A stretch of DNA of 64,000 nt from Macrostomum lignano (GCA_002269645.1 NIVC01001420.1:23576-87575); one strand, 5' to 3'. Positions 6,900 to 64,000 are shown, numbered from the stretch's first letter. The notes: a model not told the origin generated them from the letters alone. Numbers and translations: made by a program.

Positions 6900-9800
6900 C
6901 AAACAGACACAGAAATCTGTTCCAGTTGTGTCTGTAGGTTATGTGGACCACCTGAGAGCCAGAGCCTCAAACAGACAGAGAAATCTGTTCGAGTTGTGTC
7001 TGTAGGTTAGATGGACCAGCTATTCTACAGCACTTCTAGGCGATAATCTGAGCCAGGAATCTCCAAGAGCCTCTCGTTACACATCCAGATGTTCTGCCTT
7101 GATGCTGGACTAGCTCACTTTCTAGGAATCTGTTCTGATTGCATTCTAACAAACTGAAGCATTCTCGGCACTAAACTTTCTCGGCGGCTCTGAGAGCCAG
7201 AGCCTCAAACAGACAGAGAAATCTGTTCGAGTTGTGTCTGTAGGTTAGGTGGACCAGCTATTCTACAGCACTTCTAGGCGATAATCTGAGCCAGGAATCT
7301 CCGAGAGCCTCTCGTTACACATCCAGATGTTCTGCCTTGATGCTGGACTAGCTCACTTTCTAGGAATCTGTTCTGATTACATTCTAACAAACTGAAGCAT
7401 TCTCGGCACTAAACTTTCTCAGCGGCTCTGAGATCCAGAGCCTCAAACAGACAGAAATCTGTTCGAGTTGTGTCTGTAGGTTAGGTGGACCAGCTACTCC
7501 ACAGCACTTCTAGGCGATAATCTGAGCCAGGAGTCTTCGAGAGACTTTCGTTACACATCCAGATGTTCTGCCTTGATGCTGGACTAGCTCACTTTCTAGG
7601 AATCTGTTCTGATTGCATTCTAACAAACTGAAGCATTTTCTGCACTAAACTTTCTCGGCGGCTCTAAGAGCCAGAGCCTAAACAGACAGAGAAATCTGCT
7701 CGAGTTGTGTCTGTAGGTTAGGTGGACCACCTTCTGAGAAACAAAGCCTCAAACAGACTGAGAGAGCTGCTTCAGTTCTGTCTGTAGGTTATGTGGACCA
7801 TTTAAGAGCCAGAGTCTCAAACAGACAGAGAAATCTGTTCGAGTTGTGTCTGTAGGTTAGGTGGACCAGCTATTCTACAGCACTTCTAGACGATAATCCG
7901 AGCCAGGAATCTCCGAGAGCCTCTCGTTACACATCCAGATGTTCTGCCTTGATGCTGGACTAGCTCACTTTCTAGGAATCTGTTCTGATTGCATTCTAAC
8001 AAACTGAAGCATTTTCTGCACTAAACTTTCTCGGTGGCTCTAAGAGCCAGAGCCTAAACAGACAGAGAAATCTGCTTGAGGAGTTGTGTCTGTAGGTTAG
8101 GTGGACCACCTTCTGAGAGACAAAGCCTCAAACAGACTGAGAGAGCTGCTTCAGTTCTGTTTGTAGGTTATGTGGACCATTTAAGAGCCAGAGCCTCAAA
8201 CAGACAGAGAAATCTGTTCGAGTTGTGTCTGTATGTTAGGTGGACCAGCTATTCTACAGCACTTCTAGGCGATAATCTGAGCCAGGAATCTCCAAGAGCC
8301 TCTCGTTACACATCCAGATGTTCTGCCTTGATGCTGGACTAGCTCACTTTCTAGGAATCTGTTCTGATTGCATTCTAACAAACTGAAGCATTCTCGGCAC
8401 TAAACTTTCTCAGCGGCTCTGAGAGCCAGAGCCTCAAACAGACAGAGAAATCTGTTCGAGTTGTGTCTGTAGGTTAGGTGGACCAGCTACTCCACAGCAC
8501 TTCTAGGCGATAATCTGAGCCAGGAATCTCCGAGAGCCTCTCGTTACACATCCAGATGTTCTGCCTTGATGCTGGACTAGCTCACTTTCTAGGAATCTGT
8601 TCTGATTGCATTCTAACAAACTGAAGCATTCTCGGCACTAAACTTTCTCAGCGGCTCTGAGAGCCAGAGCCTCAAACAGACAGAAATCTGTTCGAGTTGT
8701 GTCTGTAGGTTAGATGGACCAGCTATTCTACAGCACTTCTAGGCGATAATCTGAGCCAGGAATCTCCAAGAGCCTCTCGTTACACATCCAGATGTTCTGC
8801 CTTGATGCTGGACTAGCTCACTTTCTAGGAATCTGTTCTGATTGCATTCTAACAAACTGAAGCATTCTCGGCACTAAACTTTCTCGGCGGCTCTGAGAGA
8901 CAGAGCCTCAAACAGACAGAGAAATCTGTTCGAGTTGTGTCTGTAGGTTAGGTGGACCAGCTATTCTACAGCACTTCTAGGCGATAATCTGAGCCAGGAA
9001 TCTCCGAGAGCCTTTCGTTACACATCCAGATGTTCTGCCTTGATGCTGGACTAGCTCACTTTCTAGGAATCTGTTCTGATTACATTCTAACAAACTGAAG
9101 CATTCTCGGCACTAAACTTTCTCAGCGGCTCTGAGATCCAGAGCCTCAAACAGACAGAAATCTGTTCGAGTTGTGTCTGTAGGTTAGATGGACCAGCTAC
9201 TCCACAGCACTTCTAGGCGATAATCTGAGCCAGGAGTCTTCGAGAGACTTTCGTTACACATCCAGATGTTCTGCCTTGATGCTGGACTAGCTCACTTTCT
9301 AGGAATCTGTTCTGATTGCATTGTAACAAACTGAAGCATTTTCTGCACTAAACTTTCTCGGCGGCTCTAAGAGCCAGAGCCTAAACAGACAGAGAAATCT
9401 GCTCGAGTTGTGTCTGTAGGTTAGGTGGACCACCTTCTGAGAGACAAAGCCTCAAACAGACTGAGAGAGCTGCTTCAGTTCTGTCTGTAGGTTATGTGGA
9501 CCATTTAAGAGCCAGAGCCTCAAACAGACAGAGAAATCTGTTCGAGTTGTGTCTTTAGGTTAGGTGGACCAGCTATTCTACAGCACTTCTAGGCGATAAT
9601 CCGAGCCAGGAATCTCCGAGAGCCTCTCGTTACACATCCAGATGTTTTGCCTTGATGCTGGACTAGCTCACTTTCTAGGAATCTGTTCTGATTGCATTCT
9701 AACAAACTGAAGCATTTTCTGCACTAAACTTTCTCGGTGGCTCTAAGAGCCAGAGCCTAAACAGACAGAGAAATCTGCTCGAGTTGTGTCTGTAGGTTAG

Positions 9801-12800
9801 GTGGACCACCTTCTGAGAGACAAAGCCTCAAACAGACTGAGAGAGCTGCTTCAGTTCTGTTTGTAGGTTATGTGGACCATTTAAGAGCCAGAGCCTCAAA
9901 CAGACAGAGAAATCTGTTCGAGTTGTGTCTGTATGTTAGGTGGACCAGCTATTCTACAGCACTTCTAGGCGATAATCTGAGCCAGGAATCTCCGAGAGCC
10001 TCTCGTTACACATCCAGATGTTCTGCCTTGATGCTGGACTAGCTCACTTTCTAGCATACATGCGCAACAGTCGGCCGAGTCGGCCGATCCGGCCGACCGA
10101 TTTGGCGGCCAACCAAGGTAAGTCGCAAAAATGCCCACCCGAAAGAATCATACGTAGTACTAATTAGATGACGAGGCATTTAGCCCTTATAAGACAGTTA
10201 TAGTTACTCCTGCCGTTTACCCAAAATTGCGTTCATTTTGCTTAAGGGTTTCTTTTACAGGTAAGTCGCATTTTTGGCCAAAAACTACGTCGCATTTTTT
10301 GTTAAAACTAAGTCGCACGGCCGACCGAATTTTGGAGGTTGCGCATGTATGCTTTCTAGGAATCTGTTCTGATTGCATTCTAACAAACTGAAGCATTCTC
10401 GGCACTAAACTTTCTCGGCGGCTCTGAGAGCCAGAGCCTTAAACAGACAGAAATCTGTTCGAGTTGTGTCTGTAGGTTAGATGGACCAGCTATTCTACAG
10501 CACTTCTAGGCGATAATCTGAGCCAGGAATCTCCAAGAGCCTCTCGTTACACATCCAGATGTTCTGCCTTGATGCTGGACTAGCTCACTTTCTAGGAATC
10601 TGTTCTGATTGCATTCTAACAAACTGAAGCATTCTCGGCACTAAACTTTCTCGGCGGCTCTGAGAGCCAGAGCCTCAAACAGACAGAGAAATCTGTTCGA
10701 GTTGTGTCTGTAGGTTAGGTGGACCAGCTATTCTACAGCACTTCTAGGCGATAATCTGAGCCAGGAATCTCCGAGAGCCTCTCGTTACACATCCAGATGT
10801 TCTGCCTTGATGCTGGACTAGCTCACTTTCTAGGAATCTGTTCTGATTACATTCTAACAAACTGAAGAATTCTCGGCACTAAACTTTCTCAGCGGCTCTG
10901 GGATCCAGAGCCTCAAACAGACAGAAATCTGTTCGAGTTGTGTCTGTAGGTTAGGTGGACCAGCTACTCCACAGCACTTCTAGGCGATAATCTGAGCCAG
11001 GAGTCTTCGAGAGACTTTCGTTACACATCCAGATGTTCTGCCTTGATGCTGGACTAGCTCACGTTCTAGGAATCTGTTCTGATTGCATTGTAACAAACTG
11101 AAGCATTTTCTGCACTAAACTTTCTCGGCGGCTCTAAGAGCCAGAGCCTAAACAGACAGAGAAATCTGCTCGAGTTGTGTCTGTAGGTTAGGTGGACCAC
11201 CTTCTGAGAGACAAAGCCTCAAACAGACTGAGAGAGCTGCTTCAGTTCTGTCTGTAGGTTATGTGGACCATTTAAGAGCCAGAGCCTCAAACAGACAGAA
11301 ATCTGTTCGAGTTGTGTCTGTAGGTTAGGTGGACCAGCTACTCCACAGCACTTCTAGGCGATAATCCGAGCCAGGAATCTCCGAGAGCCTCTCGTTACAC
11401 ATCCAGATGTTCTGCCTTGATGCTGGACTAGCTCACTTTCTAGGAATCTGTTCTGATTGCATTCTAACAAACTGAAGCATTTTCTGCACTAAACTTTCTC
11501 GGTGGCTCTAAGAGCCAGAGCCTAAACAGACAGAGAAATCTGCTCGAGTTGTGTCTGTAGGTTAGGTGGACCACCTTCTGAGAGACAAAGCCTCAAACAG
11601 ACTGAGAGAGCTGCTTCAGTTCTGTCTGTAGGTTATGTGGACCATTTAAGAGCCAGAGCCTCAAACAGACAGAGAAATCTGTTCGAGTTGTGTCTGTAGG
11701 TTAGGTGGACCAGCTATTCTACAGCACTTCTAGGCGATAATCCGAGCCAGGAATCTCTAAGAGCCTCTCGTTACGCATCCAGATGTTCTGCCTTGATGCT
11801 GGACTAGCTCACTTTCTAGGAATCTGTTCTGATTGCATTCTAACAAACTGAAGCATTCTCGGCACTAAACTTTCTCGGCGGCTCTAAGAGCCAGAGCCTC
11901 AAACAGACAGAGAAATCTGTTCGAGTTGTGTCTGTAAGTTAGATGGACCAGCTATTCTACAGCACTTCTAGGCGATAATCTGAGCCAGGAATCTCCGAGA
12001 GCCTCTCGTTACACATCCAGATGTTCTGCCTTGATGCTGGACTAGCTCACATTCTAGGAATCTGTTCTGATTGCATTCTAACAAACTGAAGCATTCTCGG
12101 CAACAAAAAATTCTCGGCGGCTCTGAGAGCCAGAGCCTCAAACAGACAGAGAAATCTGTTCGAGTTGAGTCTGTAGGTTAGGTGGACCAGCTACTCCACA
12201 GCACTTCTAGGCGATAATCTGAGCCAGGAATCTCCGAGAGCCTCTCGTTACACATCCAGATGTTCTGCCTTGATGCTGGACTAGCTCACTTTCTAGGAAT
12301 CTGTTCTGATTGCATTCTAACAAACTGAAGCATTCTCGGCACTAAACTTTCTCGGCGGCTCTGACAGCCAGAGCCTTAAACAGACAGAAATCTGTTCGAG
12401 TTGTGTCTGTAGGTTAGATGGACCAGCTATTCTACAGCACTTCTAGGCGATAATCTGAGCCAGGAATCTCCAAGAGCCTCTCGTTACACATCCAGATGTT
12501 CTGCCTTGATGCTGGACTAGCTCACTTTCTAGGAATCTGTTCTGATTGCATTCTAACAAACTGAAGCATTCTCGGCACTAAACTTTCTCGGCGGCTCTGA
12601 GAGCCAGAGCCTCAAACAGACAGAGAAATCTGTTCGAGTTGTGTCTGTAGGTTAGGTGGACCAGCTATTCTACAGCACTTCTAGGCGATAATCTGAGCCA
12701 GGAATCTCCGAGAGCCTCTCGTTACACATCCAGATGTTCTGCCTTGATGCTGGACTAGCTCACTTTCTAGGAATCTGTTCTGATTGCATTCTAACAAACT

Positions 12801-15800
12801 GAAGCATTCTCGGCACTAAACTTTCTCAGCGGCTCTGGGATCCAGAGCCTCAAACAGACAGAAATCTGTTCGAGTTGTGTCTGTAGGTTAGGTGGACCAG
12901 CTACTCCACAGCACTTCTAGGCGATAATCTGAGCCAGGAGTCTTCGAGAGACTTTCGTTACACATCCAGATGTTCTGCCTTGATGCTGGACTAGCTCACG
13001 TTCTAGGAATCTGTTCTGATTGCATTGTAACAAACTGAAGCATTTTCTGCACTAAACTTTCTCGGCGGCTCTAAGAGCCAGAGCCTAAACAGACAGAGAA
13101 ATCTGCTCGAGTTGTGTCTGTAGGTTAGGTGGACCACCTTCTGAGAGACAAAGCCTCAAACAGACTGAGAGAGCTGCTTCAGTTCTGTCTGTAGGTTATG
13201 TGGACCATTCAAGAGCCAGAGCCTCAAACAGACAGAAATCTGTTCGAGTTGTGTCTGTAGGTTAGGTGGACCAGCTACTCCACAGCACTTCTAGGCGATA
13301 ATCCGAGCCAGGAATCTCCGAGAGCCTCTCGTTACACATCCAGATGTTCTGCCTTGATGCTGGACTAGCTCACTTTCTAGGAATCTGTTCTGATTGCATT
13401 CTAACAAACTGAAGCATTTTCTGCACTAAACTTTCTCGGTGGCTCTAAGAGCCAGAGCCTAAACAGAAAGAAAAATCTGCTCGAGTTGTGTCTGTAGGTT
13501 AGGTGGACCACCTTCTGAGAGACAAAGCCTCAAACAGACTGAGAGAGCTGCTTCAGTTCTGTTTGTAGGTTATGTGGACCATTTAAGAGCCAGAGCCTCA
13601 AACAGACAGAGAAATCTGTTCGAGTTGTGTCTGTAGGTTAGATGGACCAGCTATTCTACAGCACTTCTAGGCGATAATCTGAGCCAGGAATCTCCAAGAG
13701 CCTCTCGTTACACATCCAGATGTTCTGCCTTGATGCTGGACTAGCTCACTTTCTAGGAATCTGTTCTGATTGCATTCTAACAAACTGAAGCATTCTCGGC
13801 ACTAAACTTTCTCGGCGGCTCTGAGAGCCAGAGCCTCAAACAGACAGAGAAATCTGTTCGAGTTGTGTCTGTAGGTTAGGTGGACCAGCTATTCTACAGC
13901 ACTTCTAGGCGATAATCTGAGCCAGGAGTCTTCGAGAGACTTTCGTTACACATCCAGATGTTCTGCCTTGATGCTGGACTAGCTCACGTTCTAGGAATCT
14001 GTTCTGATTGCATTGTAACAAACTGAAGCATTTTCTGCACTAAACTTTCTCGGCGGCTCTAAGAGCCAGAGCCTAAACAGACAGAGAAATCTGCTCGAAT
14101 TGTGTCTGTAGGTTAGGTGGACCACCTTCTGAGAGACAAAGCCTCAAACAGACTGAGAGAGCTGCTTCAGTTCTGTCTGTAGGTTATGTGGACCATTTAA
14201 GAGCCAGAGCCTCAAACAGACAGAGAAATCTGTTCGAGTTGTGTCTGTAGGTTAGGTGGACCAGCTATTCTACAGCACTTCTAGGCGATAATCCGAGCCA
14301 GGAATCTCCGAGAGCCTCTCGTTACACATCCAGATGTTCTGCCTTGATGCTGGACTAGCTCACTTTCTAGGAATCTGTTCTGATTGCATTCTAACAAACT
14401 GAAGCATTTTCTGCACTAAACTTTCTCGGTGGCTCTAAGAGCCAGAGCCTAAACAGACAGAGAAATCTGCTCGAGTTGTGTCTGTAGGTTAGGTGGACCA
14501 CCTTCTGAGAGACAAAGCCTCAAACAGACTGAGAGAGCTGCTTCAGTTCTGTCTGTAGGTTATGTGGACCATTTAAGAGCCAGAGCCTCAAACAGACAGA
14601 GAAATCTGTTCGAGTTGTGTCTTTAGGTTAGGTGGACCAGCTATTCTACAGCACTTCTAGGCGATAATCTGAGCCAGGAATCTCCGAGAGCCTCTCGTTA
14701 CACATCCAGATGTTCTGCCTTGATGCTGGACTAGCTCACTTTCTAGGAATCTGTTCTGATTGCATTCTAACAAACTGAAGCATTCTCGGCACTAAATTTT
14801 CTCGGCGGCTCTGAGAGCCAGAGCCTCAAACAGACAGAGAAATCTGTTCGAGTTGTGTCTGTAGGTTAGGTGGACCAGCTATTCTACAGCACTTCTAGGC
14901 GATAATCTGAGCCAGGAATCTCCAAGAGCCTCTCGTTACACATCCAGATGTTCTGCCTTGATGCTGGACTAGCTTACTTTCTAGGAATCTGTTCTGATTA
15001 CATTCTAACAAACTGAAGCATTCTCGGCACTAAACTTTCTCGGCGGCTCTGAGAGCCAGAGCCTCAAACAGACAGAAATCTGTTCGAGTTGTGTCTGTAG
15101 GTTAGGTGGACCAGCTACTCCACAGCACTTCTAGGCGATAATCTGAGCCAGGAGTCTTCGAGAGACTTTCGTTACACATCCAGATGTTCTGCCTTGATGC
15201 TGGACTAGCTCACTTTCTAGGAATCTGTTCTGATTGCATTGTAACAAACTGAAGCATTTTCTGCACTAAACTTTCTCGGCGGCTCTAAGAGCCAGAGCCT
15301 AAACAGACAGAGAAATCTGCTCGAGTTGTGTCTGTAGGTTAGGTGGACCACCTTCTGAGAGACAAAGCCTCAAACAGACTGAGAGAGCTGCTTCAGTTCT
15401 GTCTGTAGGTTATGTGGACCATTTAAGAGCCAGAGCCTCAAACAGACAGAGAAATCTGTTCGAGTTGTGTCTGTAGGTTAGGTGGACCAGCTATTCTACA
15501 GCACTTCTAGGCGATAATCCGAGCCAGGAATCTCTAAGAGCCTCTCGTTACGCATCCAGATGTTCTGCCTTGATGCTGGACTAGCTCACTTTCTAGGAAT
15601 CTGTTCTGATTGCATTCTAACAAACTGAAGCATTCTCGGCACTAAACTTTCTCGGCGGCTCTAAGAGCCAGAGCCTCAAACAGACAGAGAAATCTGTTCG
15701 AGTTGTGTCTGTAAGTTAGATGGACCAGCTATTCTACAGCACTTCTAGGCGATAATCTGAGCCAGGAATCTCCGAGAGCCTCTCGTTACACATCCAGATG

Positions 15801-17295
15801 TTCTGCCTTGATGCTGGACTAGCTCACATTCTAGGAATCTGTTCTGATTGCATTCTAACAAACTGAAGCATTCTCGGCAACAAAAAATTCTCGGCGGCTC
15901 TGAGAGCCAGAGCCTAAACAGACAGAGAAATCTGTTCGAGTTGAGTCTGTAGGTTAGGTGGACCAGCTACTCCACAGCACTTCTAGGCGATAATCTGAGC
16001 CAGGAATCTCCGAGAGCCTCTCGTTACACATCCAGATGTTCTGCCTTGATGCTGGACTAGCTCACTTTCTAGGAATCTGTTCTGATTGCATTCTAACAAA
16101 CTGAAGCATTCTCGGCACTAAACTTTCTCGGCGGCTCTGAGAGCCAGAGCCTCAAACAGACAGAGAAATCTGTTCGAGTTGTGTCTGTAGGTTAGGTGGA
16201 CCAGCTACTCCACAGCACTTCTAGGCGATAATCTGAGCCAGGAATCTTCAAGAGACTTTCGTTACACATCCAGATGTTCTGCCTTGATGCTGGACTAGCT
16301 CACTTTCTAGGAATCTGTTCTGATTGCATTCTAACAAACTGAAGCATTCTCGGCACTAAATTTTCTCGGCGGTTCTGAGAGCCAGAGCTTCAAACAGACA
16401 GAGAAATCTGTTCGAGTTGTGTCTGTAGGTTAGGTGGACCAGCTATTCTACAGCACTTCTAGGCGATAATCCGAGCCAGGAATCTCCGAGAGCCTCTCGT
16501 TACACATCCAGATGTTCTGCCTTGATGCTGGACTAGCTCACTTTCTAAGAATCTGTTCTGATTGCATTCTAACAAACTGAAGCATTCTCGGCACTAAATT
16601 TTCTCGGCGGCTCTGAGAGCCAGAGCCTCAAACAGACAGAAATCTGTTCGAGTTGTGTCTGTAGGTTAGGTGGACCAGCTATTCTACAGCACTTCTAGGC
16701 GATAATCCGAGCCAGGAGTCTCCGAGAGCCTCTCGTTACACATCCAGATGTTCTGCCTTGATGCTGGACTAGCTCACTTTCTAGGAATCTGTTCTGATTG
16801 CATTCTAACAAACTGAAGCATTTTCTGCACTAAACTTTCTCGGCGGCTCTGAGAGCCAGAGCCCTAAACAGACAGAGAAATCTGTTCGAGTTGTGTCTGT
16901 AGGTTAGGTGGACCACCTTCTGAGAGACAAAGCCTCAAACAGACTGAGAGAGCTGCTTCAGTTCTGTCTGTAGGTTATGTGGACCACCTAATAGCCAGAG
17001 CTCTAAACAGACAGAGAAATCTGTTCGAGTTGTGTCTGTAGGTTAGGTGGACCAGCTATTCTATAGCACTTCTAGGCGATAATCTGAGCCAGGAATCTCC
17101 GAGAGCCTCTCGTTACACATCCAGATGTTCTGCCTTGATGCTGGACTAGCTCACTTTCTAGGAATATGTTCTGATTGCATTCTAACAAACTGAAGCATTC
17201 TCGGCACTAAACTTTCTCAGCGGCTCTGAGAGCCAGAGCCTCAAACAGACAGAGAAATCTGTTCGAGTTGTGTCTGTAGGTTAGGTGGACCAGCT
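6900..17295. repeat. Satellite array: ~35 x 236-238-bp units plus ~12 pairs of ~67-bp head-only units
   Basis: Unit GAGCCAGAGCCTCAAACAGACAGAGAAATCTGTTCGAGTTGTGTCTGTAGGTTAGGTGGACCAG... recurs at 6954, 7192, 7430 (238-bp period). Short-unit pairs at approximately 7666, 8041, 9368, 9744, 11134, 11508, 13072, 13446, 14060, 14436, 15286, 16849. Counts are manual. Confidence 0.97.
10055..10351. mobile_element. 297-bp hAT-type MITE inserted in the satellite
   Basis: Perfect 14-bp TIR CATACATGCGCAAC / GTTGCGCATGTATG. 8-bp target duplication CTTTCTAG (10047-10054 and 10352-10359); removing the insert and one copy restores the satellite unit. An 8-bp TSD is typical of hAT. Confidence 0.9.
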
Positions 17296-22300: not shown

Positions 22301-24016
22301 GGGCGTTCGATTCGCTGCCCAGCATTCATTTGAGGCTCGAGAAACGATTAGAAAGTCAAAAGAGCCGCTGTACACCCTGTGTGAGCTGTGTGCATGAGTG
22401 CGTGCCTGCGGACAGCATTGGCGCGCTTGCATGTGCTCAGGAGCCAGCGGAATGCATGGGCAGAACTGCTCTTAAGTCTCAGCCATTCTTGCCTGGCTCC
22501 CAATTCAGAAGCAACTCTTCCGTCGCTGACGTGGCCGACAATGATCAGCTTCTAGGAGACGGCAACAAGCAGCAGATGTTGCAGCAGCCGATTCCAGCGG
22601 TCGCTGATTTCCTGTCCGTGCAAGACATGCGGCCGCGAGTGCAGTGCCAGCCGCGATCTCAGGCTCTGCTGCAGCCGCCGCATCATCAGCAGCGTCATCA
22701 CCATCTGACCAGCGCCAGTCTCACTAACGTGAGTCGACCGGTGCAGTTCGTCCGCTCCATCACCAGCCTCACCTCCGTGCCAGCAGCCGGCGCTACTCAT
22801 GGCTCGGCCGCTGCAGGCGCCGATTCCAGCGGCGCAGCGACAACGACGGCAGAGTCTGCGGATGCGCAGAAATTTTTCAACTTGGAGCTGCTGACTAAAC
22901 CGGTTTTCCTGCTGTTCCTGCTGTCCAACCTGCTGTGCAGCATCGGGTTCAATGCGCCGTACATCTACACTCCGGACAGGGCGCAGCGGGCCGGACACGA
23001 GGACACCGAGAGCGCCCTGCTGGTGTCGGTGATTGGCGGCGCCAACACTGTGGGCCGGCTGGGGTTCGGCTGGCTGTCAGACCGCGGCGCAGACAGTCGG
23101 CGGCTGCAGCTGTACTGGGCATCCCTGGCGGTGTCTGGAGCGGCTCTGGCCATCAGCTGCCTGTCCGATGAATACGCCTTCAGCGCTGCCTGCTGCGCCG
23201 CCTTCGGTCTGTTCTCAGGTGAGATTAATTGATATATATCTACATTCCGAGATAGATTGATGCAATTTGATGGAAGAAGCATGCATTCGAAAATCCTACG
23301 CAGGCAGTCAGCGGCGTCGCTAACGGGAGGGGACAGGGGGGACATGTCCCCCCCCCAGTAAAAGATCTGGGGGGGAACATGCCAATGCTTTGTTCCCCCA
23401 CCCCAACTTGTGACCCGAGATGGAAATCAATAATTTTGCTGCAGGGCCTGTGGTGCCAAAATGAGTCCTGCGGCGCTAAAATGAGTGCCTGCGGCGCTAA
23501 AATGAGTACTAACAACACCGATTCTGAAAATAGTGTACATGTAAGAATTGTCATGTACATGTACACGTATAATTTTTGGCTTTGTCCCCCCACCATAAAA
23601 TCCATGGCGACGCCCCTGCGCAGGCTCATTCGTGACGCTGACGTCACCGGTCCTGGTTGACCTGGTCGGCATCGACAAGCTCAGCGATTCGTTCGGCCTG
23701 ACGCTGCTGTTTCAAGGAGTTGGCGTGCTGGCTGGACCGCCTTTGGCTGGTGTGTAGCTAGCTGATGACTTTGTTGATTTGTAATTTTCTTTGTTGTCAC
23801 CCTGCCACTAGCTAAATTGAATCCGTCCGTCAGTCACCTCGACACTTCACTACATACGCAGGCCTTCTTTACGACTGGACATCATCATTTGACGTACCTT
23901 TCCTGGTGTGCGGTTGCAGCCTCATCGCCAGTGGATTAGTGATGGTGCCAGCGCATTGGCTGCTCAGAGCCGAACAACAGCAACAGCAGCTGAACTGCAT
24001 CACCCAGGAACTGTGA
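19336..24016 (+). CDS. Monocarboxylate transporter family (SLC16/MCT, MFS), 6 coding exons, ~624 aa
   Basis: Exons 19336-19663, 21117-21224, 21785-22187, 22464-23218, 23624-23749, 23862-24016, all GT-AG and phase-compatible (sum 1875 nt). Motifs DGGWGW, YLPAIICVGIYFEKYRSTAIGIAVCGSGVG, VDLVGIDKLSDSFG. The intron 3 boundaries (22188/22463) and the start codon are tentative. Confidence 0.92.
19695..20360. repeat. 34-bp minisatellite in MCT intron 1 (CCCGAATGTACATTCTTATCTGCCCCTCTTATAT)
   Basis: Roughly 19 units, period 34. Confidence 0.95.
21485..21745. repeat. Degenerate ~42-bp minisatellite in MCT intron 2
   Basis: CACCCAGTGTACATGAC core repeated about 6 times. Confidence 0.85.
22250..22470 (+). 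mobile_element. tRNA-derived SINE copy in MCT intron 3
   Basis: A-box-like TAGCCTAGCT, B-box GTTCGATTC, and core GTGTGAGC..GTGCATGAGTGCGTGCCTGCG..CAGCATTGGCGCGCTTGCATGTGCTCAG shared with 680-750, 25880-26000, 48295-48515 (-) and 60190-60420. Confidence 0.7.
23309..23618. mobile_element. 310-bp hAT-type MITE at the MCT intron 4 / exon 5 junction
   Basis: TIRs CAGCGGCGTCGCTA / TGGCGACGCCCCTG. Right TSD CGCAGGCT (23619-23626); left copy CGCAGGC(AG)T (23299-23308). Confidence 0.82.
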
Positions 24017-38066: not shown

Positions 38067-41000
38067 ATGCCTATGGCAAGTGCTATAGCTGAAATAGAAG
38101 ACCACATTCTTAAAAAATATGAAATAAGAAAGAGACTTGGAAAAGGGGTAAGAAATGTGGACACCTTAAACTAACACAACTGATTTCCTTTCAATTATTT
38201 AAAAAATAAATAAACTAAAGTCTATAAGTGATTTTAATTCAAAGAAAGTTATCAAAATGATTATAAGCCTATTATATATTATTTTTGCTACTTAAGGGCA
38301 AGGCTAAATAGGCCTATATTATTTATTTAGCTCTAACTAAGTAAGATTAAGGTTAGATTAAGGGCTAATAATTAATAGTAGAAATTTTAGTTTAGTTTTA
38401 GCTTTAGAGTATCTAGCGGGCAATTCCATATAATTATGGTCGTAACATGACAGGCTATTTTTACTTATAAAATGAAATCTAATAATAGAATACACTAAAC
38501 CAATATTTTAAATGAAAGATTTTTTTGTCAAGAATATTTTTATAGAGTTTCATGTAGATATCATCATTAATATAGATGCTATTAAACCTTGAATGGCACT
38601 TCTGGTCGTAACGATAGGATTTTTGACAGATAGAAACTAAAAGGTAAAAGTCTTATAACATTTTTCATTTTTGATATTTTGCAATAAATTTTTTAAAATT
38701 CGACTAAGAACATCTTCAGAAATCATACTCTTTTTGTAGAATATATAAACTCAAAAAGGCAACAAAGATACAAAAGAAAAGGCAGCCTTATGGTCATAAC
38801 ATTCTGGTCGTAACATATTTTGTTCTGTCAATTCAGTAACTTAGAGGTACCAATATATTAAAAATATAATTGATTATTTGTTCATCAATACTTTTATCTG
38901 ATGATGCAAGTACTATACTTTTATCTATAGTTTGTTTCAACCTTCCAAAGCTTTCTATTTGTTTTTAAAAGGTTCACAAACTTAATGATGTCTTTTGCTT
39001 AAAAAACTGTCCAAATTTTTACAAAAATTACTTTTTGCCACTTGATAACATACTAATCTAACATTTTATCATTCATTTATTCTTAGATTGTAGATGTTAC
39101 ACATAAAAAACATTTGGTAAAAAAATTGGCTAATCAGGCAGTGGCAAGCAAAAATATTGACTTTTTTCTATTTTCCAAATATGTCCATCTTATATGGAAT
39201 GAGCCTAGCCTATGTCTCTTTATCACTATTATTTTGTCTATATTATATAATATTATACAATACTAGTTTAAATACAAGTAAACAATCTATATATATATAC
39301 AAGCTGTTGAAACCCGCAGATTTTGAACCCGGGGAATTTCAATCCCGGAACTATTTTTCCATGTATTCTGAAATCTGAGGCCATACTCAAACAAAAACTT
39401 ATTAATAGTTAGTAGGATAGAGGTAGACATCAAATGGAGTACATTCATGTAAAATTAGAATTTAAGCAAACATTGATCTTGTTGGCAAGGGTGCTTTTTA
39501 GGCAGTTAATGTCTGTCTGACTCTAAAACATGTATTAGCAAACTCTGGCCTCTGCCTCTGACTCTCCCTACGTCCCTTGGATCCTTTGAAACTTCTATCT
39601 TCTCTTCTGTTTCCTCTCTTCTCTCTTGTCTCTCCTCTCTGCTCTCTCTCCTCTCCTCTCTTCTTTTTTTCCTCTCTCTTCTCTCCTCTCTTCTCTCGTA
39701 TCTTCCCTCATTTCTCTTCTTTTTCATCTCTCTTATCTCATCTCTTCTTTTCTTTTCTCTTTCCTCTCCTCCTACTCTTCTCTCATCTTTTTCTTCACCT
39801 CTCTTCTCTCACATCTTTATTTGCTCTCTGATCTCTCCTTTCTCTTCTCTCTCTTCTCTTTTATCTCTTTTCATTTCTCTCTGCTTCTCCCCTCTCTCTC
39901 TCTGCTTCTCCCCTCTCTCTCTGCTTCCCCCTCTCTCTCTCTGCTTCCCCCCTCTCTCTTATCTCTCCTCTCCTATCTTTCTTCTCCTCTCTACTCTCTC
40001 CCTTCCATTCTCCTCTTTTCTCTCCTCTCGCCTCACTCACTTCTCTCTCCCTTTGTCTCTCCTCTCGTCTCTGTAATCTCTTCTCTCTTCTCTCTCCTCT
40101 GTTCTCTCTACTCTCCCATCTCTCGTCTATTCATTTTCATCTTTGCTCTCAGCTCATCCTGCCTCTTTCATCTGTCATCTTTACTGCCTTATATGTTCTC
40201 TCATTCTGTCCTCTGTACTCTTTTCTTTCATCTCTTTTGTCTCCTTACTTTCCTTTCTCCTTTCTTCTCTTCTCTTCTCTTCCCTCTTCTATATACTCTC
40301 TCCCTCTCTCGTCTCGTCTCTTCTCTCTCCACTCTCCTCCTTTATCTCTCATCTCTCATTTCTCATCTCTCCTTATACCTCTCTCATCTGTACAACTTTA
40401 TCTCTTCTCTCTTCCATTTACTCTCTCATCTCTCCTTTCTCCTCTTTACTAACTCCTCTCTGCTCTTCTCTCTGCTCTCCTCTCATCTGCAGCTCTCTAC
40501 TCTCTCCTCTCTACTTGCTCCTCTAGTCTCTCCTCTCCACTCGCTACTCTACTCTCTACTCTCTCCTCTCTACTCGCTCCTCTACTCTCTCCTCTCTACT
40601 CGCTCCTCTACTCTCTCCTCTCTACTCGCTCCTTTACTCTCTCCTCTCTACTCGCTCCTCTACTCTCTCCTCTCTACTCGCTCCTCTACTCTCTCCTCTC
40701 TCCTCTCATTGTCCTCACTCTCTCATCTCTCCAATTATCTTTTATCTTTTCTCTTATTCCCTCTCTCACCTCTCCTCTCTTTTCGAATAGTCTATTCCTT
40801 CTCTCCACTCTCAACTGCCCCCTCAGCCATAAGCTAGATTCTTTTCTGGCCTTTGAGGTAAAAGTCTGCCCATCCCTGCTTGGAAAGCCAGTTTGTGGGA
40901 CGTAGTACACTCATGGCTAGTCTCAAGCTTTGATCACGTCATCTTTTTTGCCAATTTGCAGCCCTGAAAGGAATTTGTGTATCTTCAGCTCCACTGCAGT

Positions 41001-56245: not shown

Positions 56246-58137
<1,892 letters not shown>

Positions 58138-59004
58138 GAAATGCTTTTGCGAAGCATCCATTGCGGACTTGAATTGCACTATTCAATTAAGTAGTTAATA
58201 CTATTAATAGGTGTCGTTCTTATAACATAGCTTCGTTCGACCAATTTCTATTAGAAAGCCATAATACCGTACTTGCAGTAGTAGTTACACCGCATCTAGA
58301 GATAAATAGCCACAAATTTGTGCACTCGCTTAGGCCGTGTTTCGTATGAATTCCATAATTTTTCTCGCTAGTGTTGCGCCATTGCAGATAGATTTTTAAG
58401 GCAAAAATATTTATCTACACTTACTCTTTTAATAATTAATTAGCGCATTAGTTTCTGTCCCGTCTTAAGCAGGTTAAAGAGGCCGTCGATTTAATACATC
58501 TGTTTATTAGTTTTCCAAGCATTACCGGTTTATTCTTTCCATTGTTAATTATTTTGTTTCCTTTATCCAGCTGTTGCTATTGAAATATTGAATAAATATA
58601 AAATACGCTTTTAGCCCTCGAAACAACAACTTTTTGGTTAGCGTTATCAAAATCGAATTTAACAAATTATTAGCAATATCTTTTTTTATTTATATTTATA
58701 GAAAACAAAAATTTTATTATCGTCTGAAAATGTTCAAAAATATTTATAATATTCATATATATTTATCTAGAAATCTTAGGGCAACTTGGCCGTACATACA
58801 ACTCTTGCGAACGAAAACTCAGATTTTTCAAATCTTGTCTCCTATGTCCGTGTAGGCACTTGCAGATTTAAAATTCGTAAAACCTAATTCACATCAAGCT
58901 GTGAAGTCTTATAAAATCTAGCTATCTATACTCACTCTGTCCTTTTTGAATGATCGCGAACTCACATTCGTATCTATGAGCGTAGACTCCCTGCTCGTGC
59001 ACAT

Positions 59005-59485
59005 CTACTCTCACCTAGATTTCCCGCTCACGTCTATTCTCACCTAGATTTCCCGCTCACGTCTATTCTCACCTAGATTTCCCGCTCACGTCTATTCTCA
59101 CCTAGATTTCCCGCTCACGTCTATTCTCACCTAGATTTCCCGCTCACGTCTATTCTCACCTAGATTTCCCGCTCACGTCTATTCTCAGCTAGATTTCCCG
59201 CTCACGTCTATTCTCACCTAGATTTTCTGCTCACATCTATTCTCACCTAGATTTCCTGCTCACATCTATTCTCACCTAGATTTCCTGCTCACATCTAGTC
59301 TCACCTAAATTTCCTGTTCACATCTAGTCTCACCTAGATTTCCTGCTCACATCTATTCGCACATAGACTGGCTGCTCGCTTCTAATCTAACCTAGATTTC
59401 CTGCTCACATTCTCACCTGCACTGTCTCATCTCATCCAGACGGGCTGCTCATTTTCTAATCTCACCCAGACCGGCTGCTCATCTC
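59005..59485. repeat. 29-bp minisatellite (TCTATTCTCACCTAGATTTCCCGCTCACG) upstream of the KDM1B-like exon
   Basis: Roughly 16 units, decaying rightwards into the acceptor at 59493. Confidence 0.93.
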
Positions 59486-59493
59486 TTATCTAG

Positions 59494-62400
59494 GATCGCA
59501 GCCCACTGTTTCTAAGAAACACAGACCAAATATCTGTCTTCTGAAACGCAAACGCGAACCCGATAGCTCTGACTTCGTCGGCAGCCGCGGTGCTCTCGAA
59601 GGCTGCACAAAATCTGGTTGCGGCGAGTCTCAACCGGTCTGTTTCGCCCGCCTATCGTCTCGTTGCGTCGCTATAGCAACAGAATCTAATTCTAAAACGT
59701 CGCGTTGGTACCACCTGAGCAGGTGGGAGCACTATTGCAACGCCTGTTTTGAGCTGTGCTATCGAGGCCGGTTATCCAACGAATGGGCACCTAGTTGGGT
59801 TGCTCAGCTCAGATCGGCCTGGTTGCGTGCGGAGTGCCGCCAGCCCAGCCCCAGGGAACTGCTGGCTAACGCCGCACTGCCCTACTGGGCCTCTTGTCGA
59901 GACTGCGGCCGGTGGAGACAATTGGACACTGGCTCGGATTGTAATAGCGATAACTATTATAACTTGTTGCCAAGGCGTTTGTTAGAGTTTCGATGCAGTA
60001 ATTGCGACGAACCCGAACACCCGGGCGTGGCTTGGGCCGCGTCGGATCCTGATTTCCTGTCCAGCCTGGCTGCTCCTGTGCTGCTGCAGGACAACTGCTG
60101 TAGAAGGCTGCTGCTGTTCGACTCCAAGTTGAACGGCTGCAGGCCTTTAAGCGTTGGTCTGGCGCCTCTGCCCGGTGATCAGCTGATTGGTAGGGCTTAG
60201 CGGTAAAATGCGTCCCCTGGTTCGATTCCTGGCCAAATTCATTTTGGAGCTTGTCAGGGCCGCTGCACACTCTGTGAGCGTGTGCATGAGTGCGTGCTTG
60301 CATACAGTATTGGCGAGTTTGTATGTGCTCAGTAGTCAGCGGAATGGGCAACATTGCTTCACAGCGCCAGTGGTGGGACGGTGTCGCCGAAGGCGTTTTC
60401 CAACAGCCCTCCTACTTCGGGAGGCAGATGTAGGGATCGAGAGGCGGATGTAGGGATCGGGAGGCGGATGTAGGGATCGAGAGGCGGATGTAGGGATCGG
60501 GAGGCGGATGTAGGGATCGGGAGGCGGATGTAGGGATCGGGAGGCGGATGTAGGGATCGAGAGGCGGATGTAGGGATCGGGAGGCGGATGTAGGGATTGA
60601 GAGGCGGATGTAGGGATCGGGAGGCGGATGTAGGGATCGGGAGGCGGATTTAGGAATAGAGGTAGATTTAGGAATGGGGAGGTAGATGTAGGGATGGTGA
60701 GGTAGTTGTAGGGATGGTGAGATAGATGTAGGGATGGTGAGGTAGATGTAGGGATGGTGAGGTTGATGTAGGGAAGGTGAGGTAGATGTAGGGATGGTGA
60801 GGTAGATGTAGGGATGGGAGGTAGATGTAGGGATGGGAGATTTAAGGGAGGCTGGAAGATAGAGGAAGTGGATGAGGAGGCCCAGACTCTAAACCTCATC
60901 AGCGGTGTCCGAGTTCAGTCCACAACCAGATCGCTTCTTCCCCTCCCCGCCGCCCTTTAGACTCGCCGTCCCAGCTCCACCCGTTCGCCAGCGGCCTGTT
61001 CTCTTTCGGCCAGTCCTCGGCCGCTTCTTCGAGTTGCTCGGCTTTGTCGGTCCGGCCCGACCAGGTCGATCCCGACGAACTGGCCGCCGCCTACCCAGCT
61101 GGCCAGTTGGAGCTGCGCAACCAGCCGCAGCTGTACCTGGCAGTGCGCAATACTCTGCTAGCCGCCTGGGCCATCTGGCACTCGACGCTGGCTCAATCAT
61201 CGTCTCAGACACCAGCCGATTGGCCAACTATTGCTGGCAGTCGACGCTCTGAATCGTTAATCCTATGTAGAGGCCTGGCCAGGATTCGAATCTGTTCGGC
61301 CATTTTGCCGGCTATTATTCGTCGATTAGAACGTCAGGGCCTTATTAATTTCGGCATCCGACCTGTCGCTTCCGATGCTGCTGACGGCGACGACGGCGAT
61401 TGCGACGACGGTAGTGTCACTGATGTCGTTATTGTCGGCGACGACATTGCGGGACTGGTGGCGGCTCGGCAGCTGGTCAGCTTTGGCCGGCGCGTCGTTC
61501 TGATTGAATCGACCAACAACAACGAAAGGGATAACGACAAAGGAAATAGTCGTCGGCGACTTCGTCTACCCGACATTGCTGTCGTTGATAGCGTGTCGAA
61601 TAACCCGCTGTGTCTAATGGCGCTGCAGCGGGGCATCGGCCACAGCGGTGTTCGTAGTCTGGAGGATAATCCGTTGCTGAACGTGGACCTGTTCGACTGG
61701 CCCGACGGCGGTCGGATCGCGGCGGAGTCCGACGTGGTCTGTCAAGCTGTCGACGTCGTTACTGAGGCACTCGCCGCGGCGTCCGCTAAGCGAGTCTACG
61801 CGTCAGCTAGGCGAAAGGCTCGGACAACCGGAAGTGAAGCTGTTAGCTTCTTTGTCGAATCCGATGCTGCAAATTATGATGCAACCGGAAGTAAATCTAT
61901 TCCTGCCGGGAATGAACCCAATCCTACCGGAAGTGAAGCCAATCCTACCGGAAGTGAAGCCAATCCTACCGGAAGTGAAGCCAATCCTACCGGAAGTGAA
62001 GCCAATCCTACCGTAAGTGAAGCCAATCCTACCGGAAGTGAAGCCCATCCTACCGGAAGTGAAGCCAATCCTACCGGAAGTGAAGCAAATCCTACCGGAA
62101 GTGAACCCAATTCTACCGGAAGTAAATCAAATCCCACTGGAAAGAAATCCAATTTTACCAAAAATAGCTCGAATCCAACCGGATTTGTGTCGGCACCAAT
62201 CGAAAGTGATGACGTATCAGTTTCGACGCAAATCGACGAGCAGAGTCTGTTAGACGAGATGACCGCCAGTTCGGAGCAAGGCGCCAGATTGTTAAATTTC
62301 TACCTGGCCAGTTTAGAGTACAGATTAGGCGCCCCACTCGATCTAGTATCCGCCGCCTCGACGTTGCCGTTCGAGCGCGACAAAATTCTGCCGCAACTAA

Positions 62401-63305
62401 GCGACAATTCAGCGATTGTCGGAGTCGACACTCTGGCCGACCTGGCCGACTGGCTGGCTGCCGGCTCGCGGACGGTTCCGCTGCTGCGCGGTTCCGCCGT
62501 CGCCCGGATCTGTCGACGTCCGGCGGCCTCCTCGACTTCGCCAGACACCGGTGTCGAAGTGTCGCTAACCGACGGGCGTCGGATCCGCGCCGCCTGCTGT
62601 CTGTTGACGCTGCCGCTAGCGCCGTCGGGTCTTCTGACCGGTGACGATAATGACGGTCCGGAGTTCGAGCCGCCGCTGCCCAGTTCTAAACTGCGAGCGG
62701 CCGACGCTCACGGCTGCTGCCGTTTGTCGACGCTGAGGCTTCGATTCCGACGTCGATTCTGGCTGCCGAGTCGATGTTTTGCCGCTCTGCCGGAGTCGTC
62801 GACAAGTCGCGGCATCTGCCACCTGTTCGTCGATCCGTCCCCGGTCGATGGCGACAATTCGCCATCAACGTCGTCGGCCTTTCCGCTGTTGGCGATCTTC
62901 TGCGGCAAGGCTGTTGAACATCTGGCAGCTCAGGCTGATCCGCTCGGCTACGCCACCAGAGAGGCCACTCGTCGACTCGCCGTAATATTCGGCGAATCTG
63001 CCGAACCGCCCGTCGATTCGTCGCTGAGCAGCTGGTCCGCCGCCTACCCGGCCGCTGGTCGATGGTCGCCTACTGGCGACGCCGAATTCGCCGACGCACT
63101 TTCAGCCGACGTCGGCTGCTCTAGCGGCGGCGACGGCGACGGCGATGCCGGCCCGTTGTTCTTCGCCAGCGAAGCCGCTTCGAAGGAGTTTCCGCACAGC
63201 CTGACTGGCGCCTGCGTCAGCGGGCTGGCCGCTGCTGGCCGGGTGGCCGACTGGCTGGACGCTCGGTCTAGGCGGGTGCTGCTTCGGGCTGAGCAGCGTT
63301 GCTAG
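59494..63305 (+). CDS. KDM1B: Lysine-specific demethylase LSD2/KDM1B-like (C4H2C2 ZF, zf-CW, SWIRM, amine-oxidase fold), probably catalytically impaired
   Basis: Exon ~59494/59502-60189 encodes C..C..PVCF..RC..TSRWYHLS..EHYCNACF and LPYWASCRDCGRWRQL..FRCSNC. Exon ~60886-63305 encodes ALSVRPD..DEL..YLAVRNTLLAAW, LERQGLINFG, LEYRLGAPL, RFW and LFFASEA..FPHSLTGA. The N-terminus and intron borders are tentative. Confidence 0.88.
60190..60420 (+). mobile_element. tRNA-derived SINE copy in the KDM1B-like intron
   Basis: GGGCTTAGCGGTAA ... GGTTCGATTCC (B box), then the family core and tail. Confidence 0.75.
60420..60840. repeat. 20-bp minisatellite (GAGGCGGATGTAGGGATCGG) in the KDM1B-like intron
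   Basis: Roughly 21 units. Confidence 0.95.
61915..62145 (+). repeat. In-frame 21-bp repeat encoding (PTGSEAN)n within the KDM1B-like ORF
   Basis: AATCCTACCGGAAGTGAAGCC, about 10 units; the ORF stays open across it. Confidence 0.95.
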
Positions 63306-63369
63306 GGCCTCTGGGTGTCTATGTCTAGACATTGTCTTGTCTAGCTGTTTTGTTCTTTACATTCGGTTG

Positions 63370-63740
63370 GTAGGGTGTGTATTTCTGCTTGCTAGGGTGT
63401 GTATTTCTGCTTGCTAGGGTGGTTATTTCTGGTTGCTAGGATGTGTATTTCTGGTTGCTAGGGTGGTTATTTCTGGTTGCTAGGATGTGTATTTCTGGTT
63501 GCTAGGGTGATTCTTGGTTGCTAAGGGTGATTCTTTCTTGGTTGCTAGGGTGATTCTTTAGTTGCTAGAGTGATTCTTATTTAGTTGCTATGGTGATTCT
63601 TCTTTAGTTGCTGGGTTGATTTTTTTAGTTGCTAGGGCGCTTTAGTTGCTAGTGTGATTCTTTTTTAGTTGCTAGGGTGATTCTTCTTTAGTTGCTAAGG
63701 TGATTCTTCTTTAGCTGCTAGGGGGATTCTTTTTAGTTGC
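63370..63740. repeat. ~22-25-bp degenerate minisatellite (TAGTTGCTAGGGTGATTCTT) downstream of the KDM1B-like stop
   Basis: Seen directly. Confidence 0.85.
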
Positions 63741-64000
63741 TAAGCGCATTCGATCTGCTAAGGTCGATCAGGTTGCAACTGTCATAAGTTTTAATCACTA
63801 AAATGCTTCTTTGTGGTACCTAGAATGTTTTTGGTTGCTGGGATGCTTTCGTCTCGTCTTTACTAATGACTCTGGTCTGTTTCTCTCTGTGTTTATTGCG
63901 ATAGCTATTTTCATTTTATAGACACTTGCTACGAGCGTACTGTAAATTTAATCATACCCTCATCGTGTTTTCTTGTTGTTCTGTGTTCCTTTGCATTTTT

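Follow-up and report, generated by a model that had tools for sequence, protein, structure and literature searches.

A probable pseudo-enzyme of old origin: the LSD2/KDM1B orthologue of the flatworm Macrostomum lignano retains its zinc fingers and SWIRM domain, and its oxidase motifs are degenerate

LSD2 (KDM1B) is treated as a demethylase of mono- and dimethylated lysine 4 of histone H3 (H3K4me1/2), and the locus described here raises the question of whether an LSD2 can be maintained by selection after its catalytic function has gone. The locus lies in a 64,000-nucleotide stretch of the M. lignano genome (GCA_002269645.1, NIVC01001420.1:23576-87575; hereafter the window), in which an LSD2-like gene extends from about 59494 to 63305 on the plus strand. 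The original prediction, made from this DNA, had proposed an LSD2/KDM1B-like protein with intact chromatin-reader fingers and a degenerate oxidase active site, namely a candidate pseudo-demethylase. According to our results, the M. lignano LSD2/KDM1B orthologue is probably a non-catalytic pseudo-enzyme of old origin, which has been kept by selection. The candidate has thereby gained in strength, as more motifs are lost than had been listed, the losses are common to three genomic copies and to trematodes, the gene models are RNA-based, and the gene is under purifying selection.

The gene consists of two exons (approximately 59494-60189 and 60961-63305), which are both in one frame. Exon 1 encodes a basic N-terminal tail, a C4H2C2 finger, a CW finger, and the start of a linker, and its 5' limit is uncertain. 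Exon 2 encodes linker sequence, a SWIRM domain, and a degenerate amine-oxidase-like domain up to the stop codon TAG (63303-63305); its open frame of 2,345 bp is uninterrupted, as had been predicted for the long exon.

The C4H2C2 zinc finger (59604-59747, plus strand) was aligned residue by residue to human LSD2 (4fwe, 7xe1), and its eight ligands (C37, C42, C49, C57, H73, H79, C81, and C84) each pair with a human ligand (C53, C58, C65, C73, H84, H90, C92, and C95, respectively), which bears out the earlier claim that none is missing. The Cys and Trp residues claimed for the CW finger are likewise present (C134, C137, C167, and C170; W131 and W140), within a CW-type zinc finger at 59877-60020 on the plus strand; because the Pfam zf-CW score of 16.9 bits is under the cut-off of 27.5, this assignment rests on the alignment to LSD2. 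The SWIRM domain (amino acids 260-363; 61044-61355, plus strand) aligns to that of human LSD2, with a weak Pfam SWIRM match, and its helices are predicted with a local confidence score (pLDDT) of 75-91 in an AlphaFold2 model. Compared with a vertebrate LSD2, the fingers are 39% identical, the SWIRM domain 43%, and the oxidase domain 27%; the oxidase domains of canonical LSD2 pairs are 40-53% identical.

Searches against known proteins and structures agree with this assignment. A phmmer search of PDB sequences returned human LSD2 as the best match (E = 3.5e-53) and LSD1 as a far weaker one (5e-16); the human LSD2 score is divided into 135 bits from the fingers and SWIRM domain and just 46 bits from the oxidase domain. 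Pfam Amino_oxidase scores 84.6 bits (cut-off 19.8), covering only profile positions 190-442. The AlphaFold2 model, built from a 26-sequence alignment (predicted template modelling score 0.71), is confident over the fingers, the SWIRM domain, and both oxidase lobes, while the loop that formerly held GGR (amino acids 417-431) and a heptad insert (amino acids 533-647) are disordered. It superposes on LSD2 crystal structures with target-normalised template modelling (TM) scores of 0.77-0.80 and on LSD1 with about 0.6, and Foldseek gives E = 3e-41 for LSD2 and 5e-25 for LSD1. The match to LSD2 is thus far beyond chance in phmmer, Pfam, and Foldseek. All four architectural features of LSD2/KDM1B were found (C4H2C2 finger, CW finger, SWIRM domain, and a Tower-less oxidase fold closer to LSD2 than to LSD1), and the gene product is identified from its sequence as an LSD2/KDM1B orthologue, as originally predicted.

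The motifs of the oxidase domain were compared in a 25-sequence alignment including 20 LSD2s from outside flatworms, and the canonical LSD2s in it span sponge, cnidarian, annelid, nemertean, mollusc, myriapod, nematode, echinoderm, and vertebrate. The Rossmann dinucleotide-binding unit (61422-61538, plus strand) is degenerate by alignment and by hidden Markov model (HMM) scores. Where GxGxxG is expected, the protein reads GDDIAG (61437-61454), so that the middle Gly, which is invariant in 20/20 canonical LSD2s, is gone and two Asp residues enter the pyrophosphate-binding loop. ESTNNNERDND (61506-61538) substitutes for E-A-x-D-R-x-GGR, with the strand-2 Glu retained (LIES) and R-x-GGR changed to NNNERDND. 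NAD_binding_8 reaches 15 bits (cut-off 21.9) versus 31-52 bits in canonical LSD2s, and every Pfam Rossmann family is under its cut-off. The G-x-GAQ motif, which contacts flavin adenine dinucleotide (FAD), has become LPDIAV.

The catalytic and substrate-binding parts are altered as well. Lys661 is the catalytic Lys in both LSD1 and LSD2, and its human numbering was recovered here from the PDB chain alignment. At its position in the GCCRLSTLRLRFRRRFW block (62712-62762, plus strand), M. lignano carries Thr822 (ACG, 62730-62732), and this pairing sits in a gapless block anchored on a conserved FW. Lys661 to Thr by itself is not decisive for the loss of catalysis. In the substrate-site block (62298-62420, plus strand), FYLASLEYRLGAPL is kept in a flatworm-specific form, and WDxNE..F.G.H is replaced by TLPFERDKILPQLSDNS. 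The stretch RGICHLFVD (62808-62834, plus strand) carries a flatworm-specific Cys-His where RGLFxxFYD has its invariant Phe-x, in columns absent from the 20 other LSD2s, and SSWSAAYPAAGRWS (63027-63068, plus strand) replaces W..DP...MAYSF, whereby the aromatic-cage Tyr is lost (MAYSF to AAGRWS). The C-terminal FAD-ribityl/helix block LFFASEAASKEFPHSLTGACVSGLAAAGRV (63156-63245, plus strand) is mostly kept. Other elements of the FAD site are also kept, including the two outer Gly residues of the loop, the strand-2 Glu, NNP, TLPL, FFA-x-EA (FFAGE in two copies), and SLTGA..SG. None of the four testable features of a competent KDM1 demethylase was found (GxGxxG; R-x-GGR with G-x-GAQ; the catalytic Lys; the substrate motif with the cage Tyr).

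Most of these changes had been anticipated. The original prediction listed GDDIAG, the absence of E-A-x-x-R-x-GGR, and Thr at the K661 position, and all three hold at the coordinates above in the alignment to LSD2 orthologues, which adds G-x-GAQ, the WDxNE..F.G.H block, and the cage Tyr to the losses. Its further claim that FAGE reads FASE stands for the window copy but fails as a family trait: the Gly-to-Ser change in FFASE (AGC, 63168-63170) is private to this copy, and FAGE is found in the two other M. lignano copies, as in essentially all other LSD2s. FASE was consequently rejected as a feature of the family and is regarded as copy-specific; apart from it, the oxidase motif losses are common to all three M. 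lignano copies.

These three genomic copies are all intact and syntenic, and each of them keeps a reading frame of about 3 kb. In addition to the window gene, the same assembly carries Mlig019979.g1 (L002), with a DNA identity of 99.5%, and the diverged Mlig019979.g2 (L001), which is 92-97% identical. Between the window gene and L001 (about 7% divergence), synonymous divergence (dS) is 0.072 and nonsynonymous divergence (dN) 0.021, giving a dN/dS of 0.29 (Fisher p = 3e-9); the substitution divergence of non-coding DNA (intron, intergenic DNA, and 3' flank) is 4-11% and agrees with dS. The regional values of dN/dS are 0.10 for the fingers, 0.36 for the linker and SWIRM domain, and 0.37 for the oxidase domain (p = 3e-4). 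The original prediction had named dN/dS per domain as a way to recognise a decaying pseudogene, and that outcome is not seen, the ratio being below 1 throughout. Coding indels between copies are all multiples of 3 and are located in the heptad repeat or in a Gly/Asp run. The dead oxidase domain is still constrained, seemingly less so than the fingers. In operational terms, a pseudo-enzyme is defined by lost catalytic residues, RNA-derived models, and purifying selection, and all three were found.

The age of the loss was approached through other flatworms. An exhaustive search of 1.84 billion representatives yielded 634 relatives, and the named top matches are canonical LSD2s from sea cucumber, snails, bivalves, a nemertean, an annelid, a millipede, a sponge, a hydrozoan, nematodes, and vertebrates. 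Apart from M. lignano, flatworms contributed only proteins of Dicrocoelium dendriticum (P0003) and Paragonimus westermani (P0050/P0153), which are annotated as 'lysine-specific histone demethylase 1B'. Word-index homologue searches with the full-length query and a flatworm profile were dominated by the low-complexity repeat, with 8000 candidates scored giving 4 and 2 matches, and a word-index search with the Paragonimus N-terminal query returned a single congener. P0050 matches human LSD2 with E of about 1e-37 via the fingers and SWIRM domain, and Pfam Amino_oxidase has no match in either P0050 or P0003. Both proteins lack GxGxxG, GGR, GAQ, the substrate block, and FAGE, and both have Thr at the Lys661 column (ARLITVTL).

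In five alignment columns, M. lignano and both flukes have in common a residue that occurs in 0/20 other LSD2s; control triplets of M. lignano and two non-flatworms average 0.31 such columns and reach at most 3. Among the five are the Cys-His of RG[IF]CH[LM]F, located where an invariant Phe is otherwise found, and an Asp that occupies the position of the loop's second Gly. Between Dicrocoelium and Paragonimus, which belong to different families, identity is 40% in the dead region, 64% in the fingers, and 75% in the SWIRM domain. Because the same losses occur in the trematode orthologues, the inactivation probably predates the split of macrostomids and flukes; on these alignments, the simplest reading is probably one inactivation before the macrostomid-neodermatan divergence, followed by maintenance. 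Surveys of schistosomes listed Smp_160810 and Smp_162940 as 'putative SmLSD2', with E-values to human LSD2 of only 1e-6 and 1e-8 (PMC6288008; PMC4159997), and such weak values would be consistent with the same degenerate state.

Whether a canonical LSD2 exists beside the degenerate one was also considered. No sign of a canonical M. lignano LSD2 was seen in the annotated proteome via the representative search, which was not exhaustive in this respect and did not include the assemblies themselves. Sixteen proteins have E < 1e-30, and among the 14 whose 90%-identity cluster names were checked, 10 come from other phyla; the remaining four (P0011, P0014, P0017, and P0018) are Logan read-assemblies rich in Lys, Asn, and Ile, unlike the Ala/Arg/Gly-rich M. 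lignano proteins.

Since the FAD loop, R-x-GGR, G-x-GAQ, the substrate motif, the Lys, and the cage Tyr are lost jointly, the LSD2-like protein most likely neither binds FAD nor removes methyl groups, as far as this can be read from its sequence. With the fingers, the SWIRM domain, and the oxidase shell retained and the cofactor and substrate contacts gone, it may act as a chromatin-associated scaffold, in which the demethylase-independent activities known from mammalian LSD2 would fall to the zinc-finger/SWIRM module and to the dead oxidase surface. The non-catalytic hallmarks of LSD2 are intact and show the strongest constraint in this protein. Candidates for such retained activities are repression dependent on the CW/zinc fingers and possibly E3-ligase activity or the binding of partners or nucleosomes. 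In mammals, repression by LSD2 was found to need the Zf-CW domain and not demethylation (PMC11241480), and the E3 ligase activity of LSD2 on OGT is separable from demethylation (PMC11118440). Macrostomids and trematodes would probably have inherited the loss from their common ancestor, and selection would have kept the protein since. The original prediction had spoken of 'a non-catalytic scaffold or H3K4me reader'; its non-catalytic part agrees with our results, but the reader part has no direct support, as the H3-tail contacts of the cavity are gone.

Three other explanations were weighed. One is that the protein is still an active FAD-dependent H3K4 demethylase with a non-canonical mode of cofactor binding, other residues standing in for Lys661. 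The Rossmann beta-alpha-beta unit is still predicted in the structural model (strand 385-390, helix 394-405, strand 410-413), several FAD-site elements are retained in M. lignano (the outer loop Gly residues, the strand-2 Glu, NNP, TLPL, and FFAGE/SLTGA), and LSD1 K661A reportedly retains some activity on nucleosomes. However, two Asp residues occupy the pyrophosphate loop at an otherwise invariant Gly, R-x-GGR, G-x-GAQ, the substrate block, and the cage Tyr are lost together, the Rossmann HMMs are sub-threshold, and the trematode orthologues have no recognisable oxidase domain; we consider continued catalysis quite improbable. Still less credence is due to a decaying or recently inactivated pseudogene, or to a redundant paralogue drifting beside a canonical LSD2 elsewhere in the genome. 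Such a fate would suit a genome with hidden polyploidy and many redundant copies (PMC5730564), as well as the private Gly-to-Ser change in FAGE and the faster evolution of the oxidase domain relative to the fingers. On the other hand, the three frames of about 3 kb differ by in-frame indels only and have transcript-based models, dN/dS is significantly below 1 with the oxidase domain included, and no canonical M. lignano LSD2 is among the 14 matches checked of 16 below 1e-30. The flukes show the same losses, so the degenerate state probably dates back hundreds of millions of years and was maintained over that time.

A further explanation is neofunctionalisation, in which the former oxidase pocket or the CW finger would have become an H3K4me reader or the binder of another ligand. 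Both CW Trp residues and all zinc ligands are retained, and the region of the former active site contains conserved flatworm-specific residues (the Cys-His of RGICHLF, RL[SI]T, and YL..[LV]EY.L..PL), which suggest a new constraint rather than upkeep of a shell. Because of this hint, a new ligand or reader role is kept in view, although it seems unlikely, given that the acidic and aromatic residues holding the H3 tail in LSD1/LSD2 are gone; the CW cage was also reportedly found to be occluded by intramolecular contacts in the LSD2 structure papers of 2013.

Several points weigh against a long-maintained, non-catalytic LSD2, which nevertheless is the reading that we prefer. The retained FAD-site elements could leave room for an unusual mode of cofactor binding. 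The alignment behind the AlphaFold2 model is dominated by canonical LSD2s, which biases the model to the canonical fold. The oxidase domain has a higher dN/dS (0.37) than the fingers (0.10), with a marginal difference in dN (p = 0.07). The flatworms sampled are only three genera (Macrostomum, Dicrocoelium, and Paragonimus), and whether they share the Asp at the second Gly hinges on where a one-residue gap is put in the trematode sequences. Finally, no in-frame ATG was found over the first approximately 450 codons from TAA 59457-59459 onward, so the model has no start codon. The wider scenario, in which LSD2 catalysis was lost once in an early rhabditophoran and its descendants retained the protein over hundreds of millions of years in the role of a non-enzymatic chromatin factor, perhaps the sole LSD2 of these animals, is proposed tentatively, and we are slightly more inclined to doubt it than to accept it.

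The 5' end and the splice junction of the gene deserve description. Position 59494 is no more than a candidate acceptor; the GenBank coding sequence (CDS) of this gene, which is RNA-based, is 5'-partial and begins at 59556, and the annotated CDSs of all three copies are 5'-partial and begin at 59550-59556. The frame of exon 1 is open back to the TAA mentioned above, and its donor is G|GTAGGG at 60189/60190. The intron (60190-60960, plus strand) is a 771-nt GT..AG intron of phase 1, which includes stop codons in frame as well as a 20-bp minisatellite (60417-60839). For a paralogous copy, the RNA-derived GenBank model can be rebuilt exactly only with a junction equivalent to that of the window. 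GenBank models of this assembly derive from a genome-guided transcriptome based on RNA sequencing (PMC5730564), and the splice junction and transcription of the gene are for this reason RNA-supported. No mention of the gene identifiers Mlig019979 and Mlig012995 was found in the searchable literature or in the supplements to the neoblast/germline expression study. A previous study found ATG at the end of the spliced leader of M. lignano (PMC8629364); as an idea only, splicing this leader to the acceptor cgcag|CCCACTG (59501/59502) would preserve the frame and give MPTVSKK.... The diverged copy L001 has a second in-frame acceptor, ttcag|AAGCGC, and the window has CTG at that site. A prokaryote-type open reading frame (ORF) of 753 amino acids starting with 'TTG' was rejected, as it corresponds to exon 2 of the spliced eukaryotic gene.

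An insert of about 95 residues within the oxidase domain is located where LSD1 carries its Tower. It is encoded by an in-frame 21-bp minisatellite with a degenerate tail (61884-62183, plus strand; identified by Tandem Repeats Finder), which gives about 12 PTGSEAN heptads; there are 12 units in the window copy and nine in each of the other genomic copies. An equivalence to the Tower was rejected, because the insert is predicted to be disordered (pLDDT of about 30 over amino acids 533-647) and forms no coiled coil. Minisatellites with units of 20-29 bp are also found at 57133-57603 (GAPDH intron), 59000-59408 (just upstream of exon 1), 60417-60839 (the intron described above), and 63365-63742 (just past the stop), and the lengths of these arrays vary among the three genomic copies.

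With regard to the locus, the gene in the window is the transcript-annotated gene Mlig012995.g1, and its spliced translation shares 92-95% identity with 'hypothetical protein BOX15_Mlig019979g2' (P0001). Within the 4-kb gene region, the window and GenBank contig NIVC01002456.1, which carries Mlig012995.g1 (P0200, PAA57689.1), disagree at one base: position 61207 is A in the window and G in the contig (Gln314 versus Arg). Indels, probably located in tandem repeats, distinguish the two sequences beyond the gene region. A GAPDH gene (56249-58137; Gp_dh_N, E = 5e-40) lies on the same strand, 1.3 kb upstream of the LSD2-like gene; it is directly upstream at all three copies, and the order protein kinase, GAPDH, and LSD2-like gene is kept at L001. 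An artefact of assembly or annotation was ruled out, as three independent contigs are concordant and the splice junction is the same as in the RNA-based model. Previous work reported hidden polyploidy, assembly redundancy, and many redundant copies in M. lignano (PMC5730564), and the three-copy pattern fits this description.

Partial losses, apparently independent ones, were also observed outside flatworms. In the LSD2 of the octopod Argonauta hians (P0010), GGR is lost and Lys661 is changed to Thr, with GxGxxG kept; the mite Tropilaelaps mercedesae (P0031) has Gln in place of the Lys; and in the hagfish Myxine glutinosa (P0033), the substrate block and cage Tyr are lost and an N-terminal THAP domain is present. 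These cases may reflect recurrent loss of LSD2 catalysis or errors in the respective gene models. A protein of Gordionus sp. (P0035, Nematomorpha) has LSD2-like fingers and a SWIRM domain followed by unrelated sequence where the oxidase domain is expected, which could be a gene-model artefact or another loss.

The remainder of the window contains about 10 kb of satellite DNA (6952-16915) with a unit of about 238 bp and higher-order periods of 374-474 bp, a fragment of an MFS_1 transporter (22330-23232), and an AT-rich stretch (24000-48000) whose GC content is 0.28-0.37, compared with 0.43-0.57 elsewhere in the window. CT-rich, strongly skewed low-complexity arrays are present at 39601-40731 and account for a 403-aa 'ORF' at 39626-40837.

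M. lignano is experimentally tractable, with RNA interference, transgenesis, and accessible stem cells and germline. A naturally inactive, selected LSD2 in such a model would offer a clean system for the roles of the fingers, SWIRM domain, and oxidase shell. To our knowledge, the demethylase-independent roles of LSD2 come only from mutants and over-expression in mammalian cells, and the catalogue of chromatin pseudo-enzymes has so far been dominated by JmjC proteins, to which a KDM1-family case would be added. If a single ancient loss is true, LSD2 has a conserved core job independent of demethylation; confirmation of the sole-copy, phylum-wide scenario would raise the interest of the finding, and the partial losses in octopod, mite, and hagfish, if true, would make the loss of LSD2 catalysis recurrent. 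The Paragonimus and Dicrocoelium LSD2 orthologues without a recognisable FAD site bear on parasite drug discovery, and, if the same holds for schistosomes and flukes at large, their 'LSD2' targets would not be hit by flavin-directed inhibitors. Our literature search found no description of a natural KDM1B or KDM1-family pseudo-enzyme and no comment on flatworm LSD2 active sites.

Compared with human and mouse LSD2 (KDM1B, AOF1; 4fwe, 4gu0, and 4hsu), the M. lignano protein has the C4H2C2 finger, CW finger, linker, SWIRM domain, and Tower-less oxidase domain in the same order, but it is without the FAD, substrate, and catalytic motifs and adds the disordered heptad insert of about 95 residues. 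The trematode KDM1B proteins (P. westermani KAF8570578.1 and D. dendriticum) resemble it in the conserved fingers and SWIRM domain, the Lys-to-Thr change, the loss of GxGxxG, and the Cys-His pair. However, they are more degenerate, with no Pfam Amino_oxidase match and many long insertions, whereas M. lignano retains the C-terminal half of the Amino_oxidase profile and FFAGE. Trematode and schistosome LSD2s have been listed as demethylases and drug targets without comment on the active site (PMC6288008, PMC4159997).

LSD1 (KDM1A) has the SWIRM and amine-oxidase domains in common with the M. lignano protein, but it is without N-terminal zinc fingers and has a coiled-coil Tower where the M. lignano protein has the disordered insert, and the match to LSD1 in sequence and fold is much weaker. 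Naturally dead relatives of the JmjC demethylases, such as JARID2, are well known, and in these pseudo-demethylases an enzyme fold was likewise kept as a chromatin scaffold after the loss of cofactor ligands, although the fold is a different one. Demethylase-independent functions of LSD1 and LSD2 have been described from engineered mutants (PMC11241480), whereas the KDM1 fold of M. lignano appears to have been inactivated naturally.

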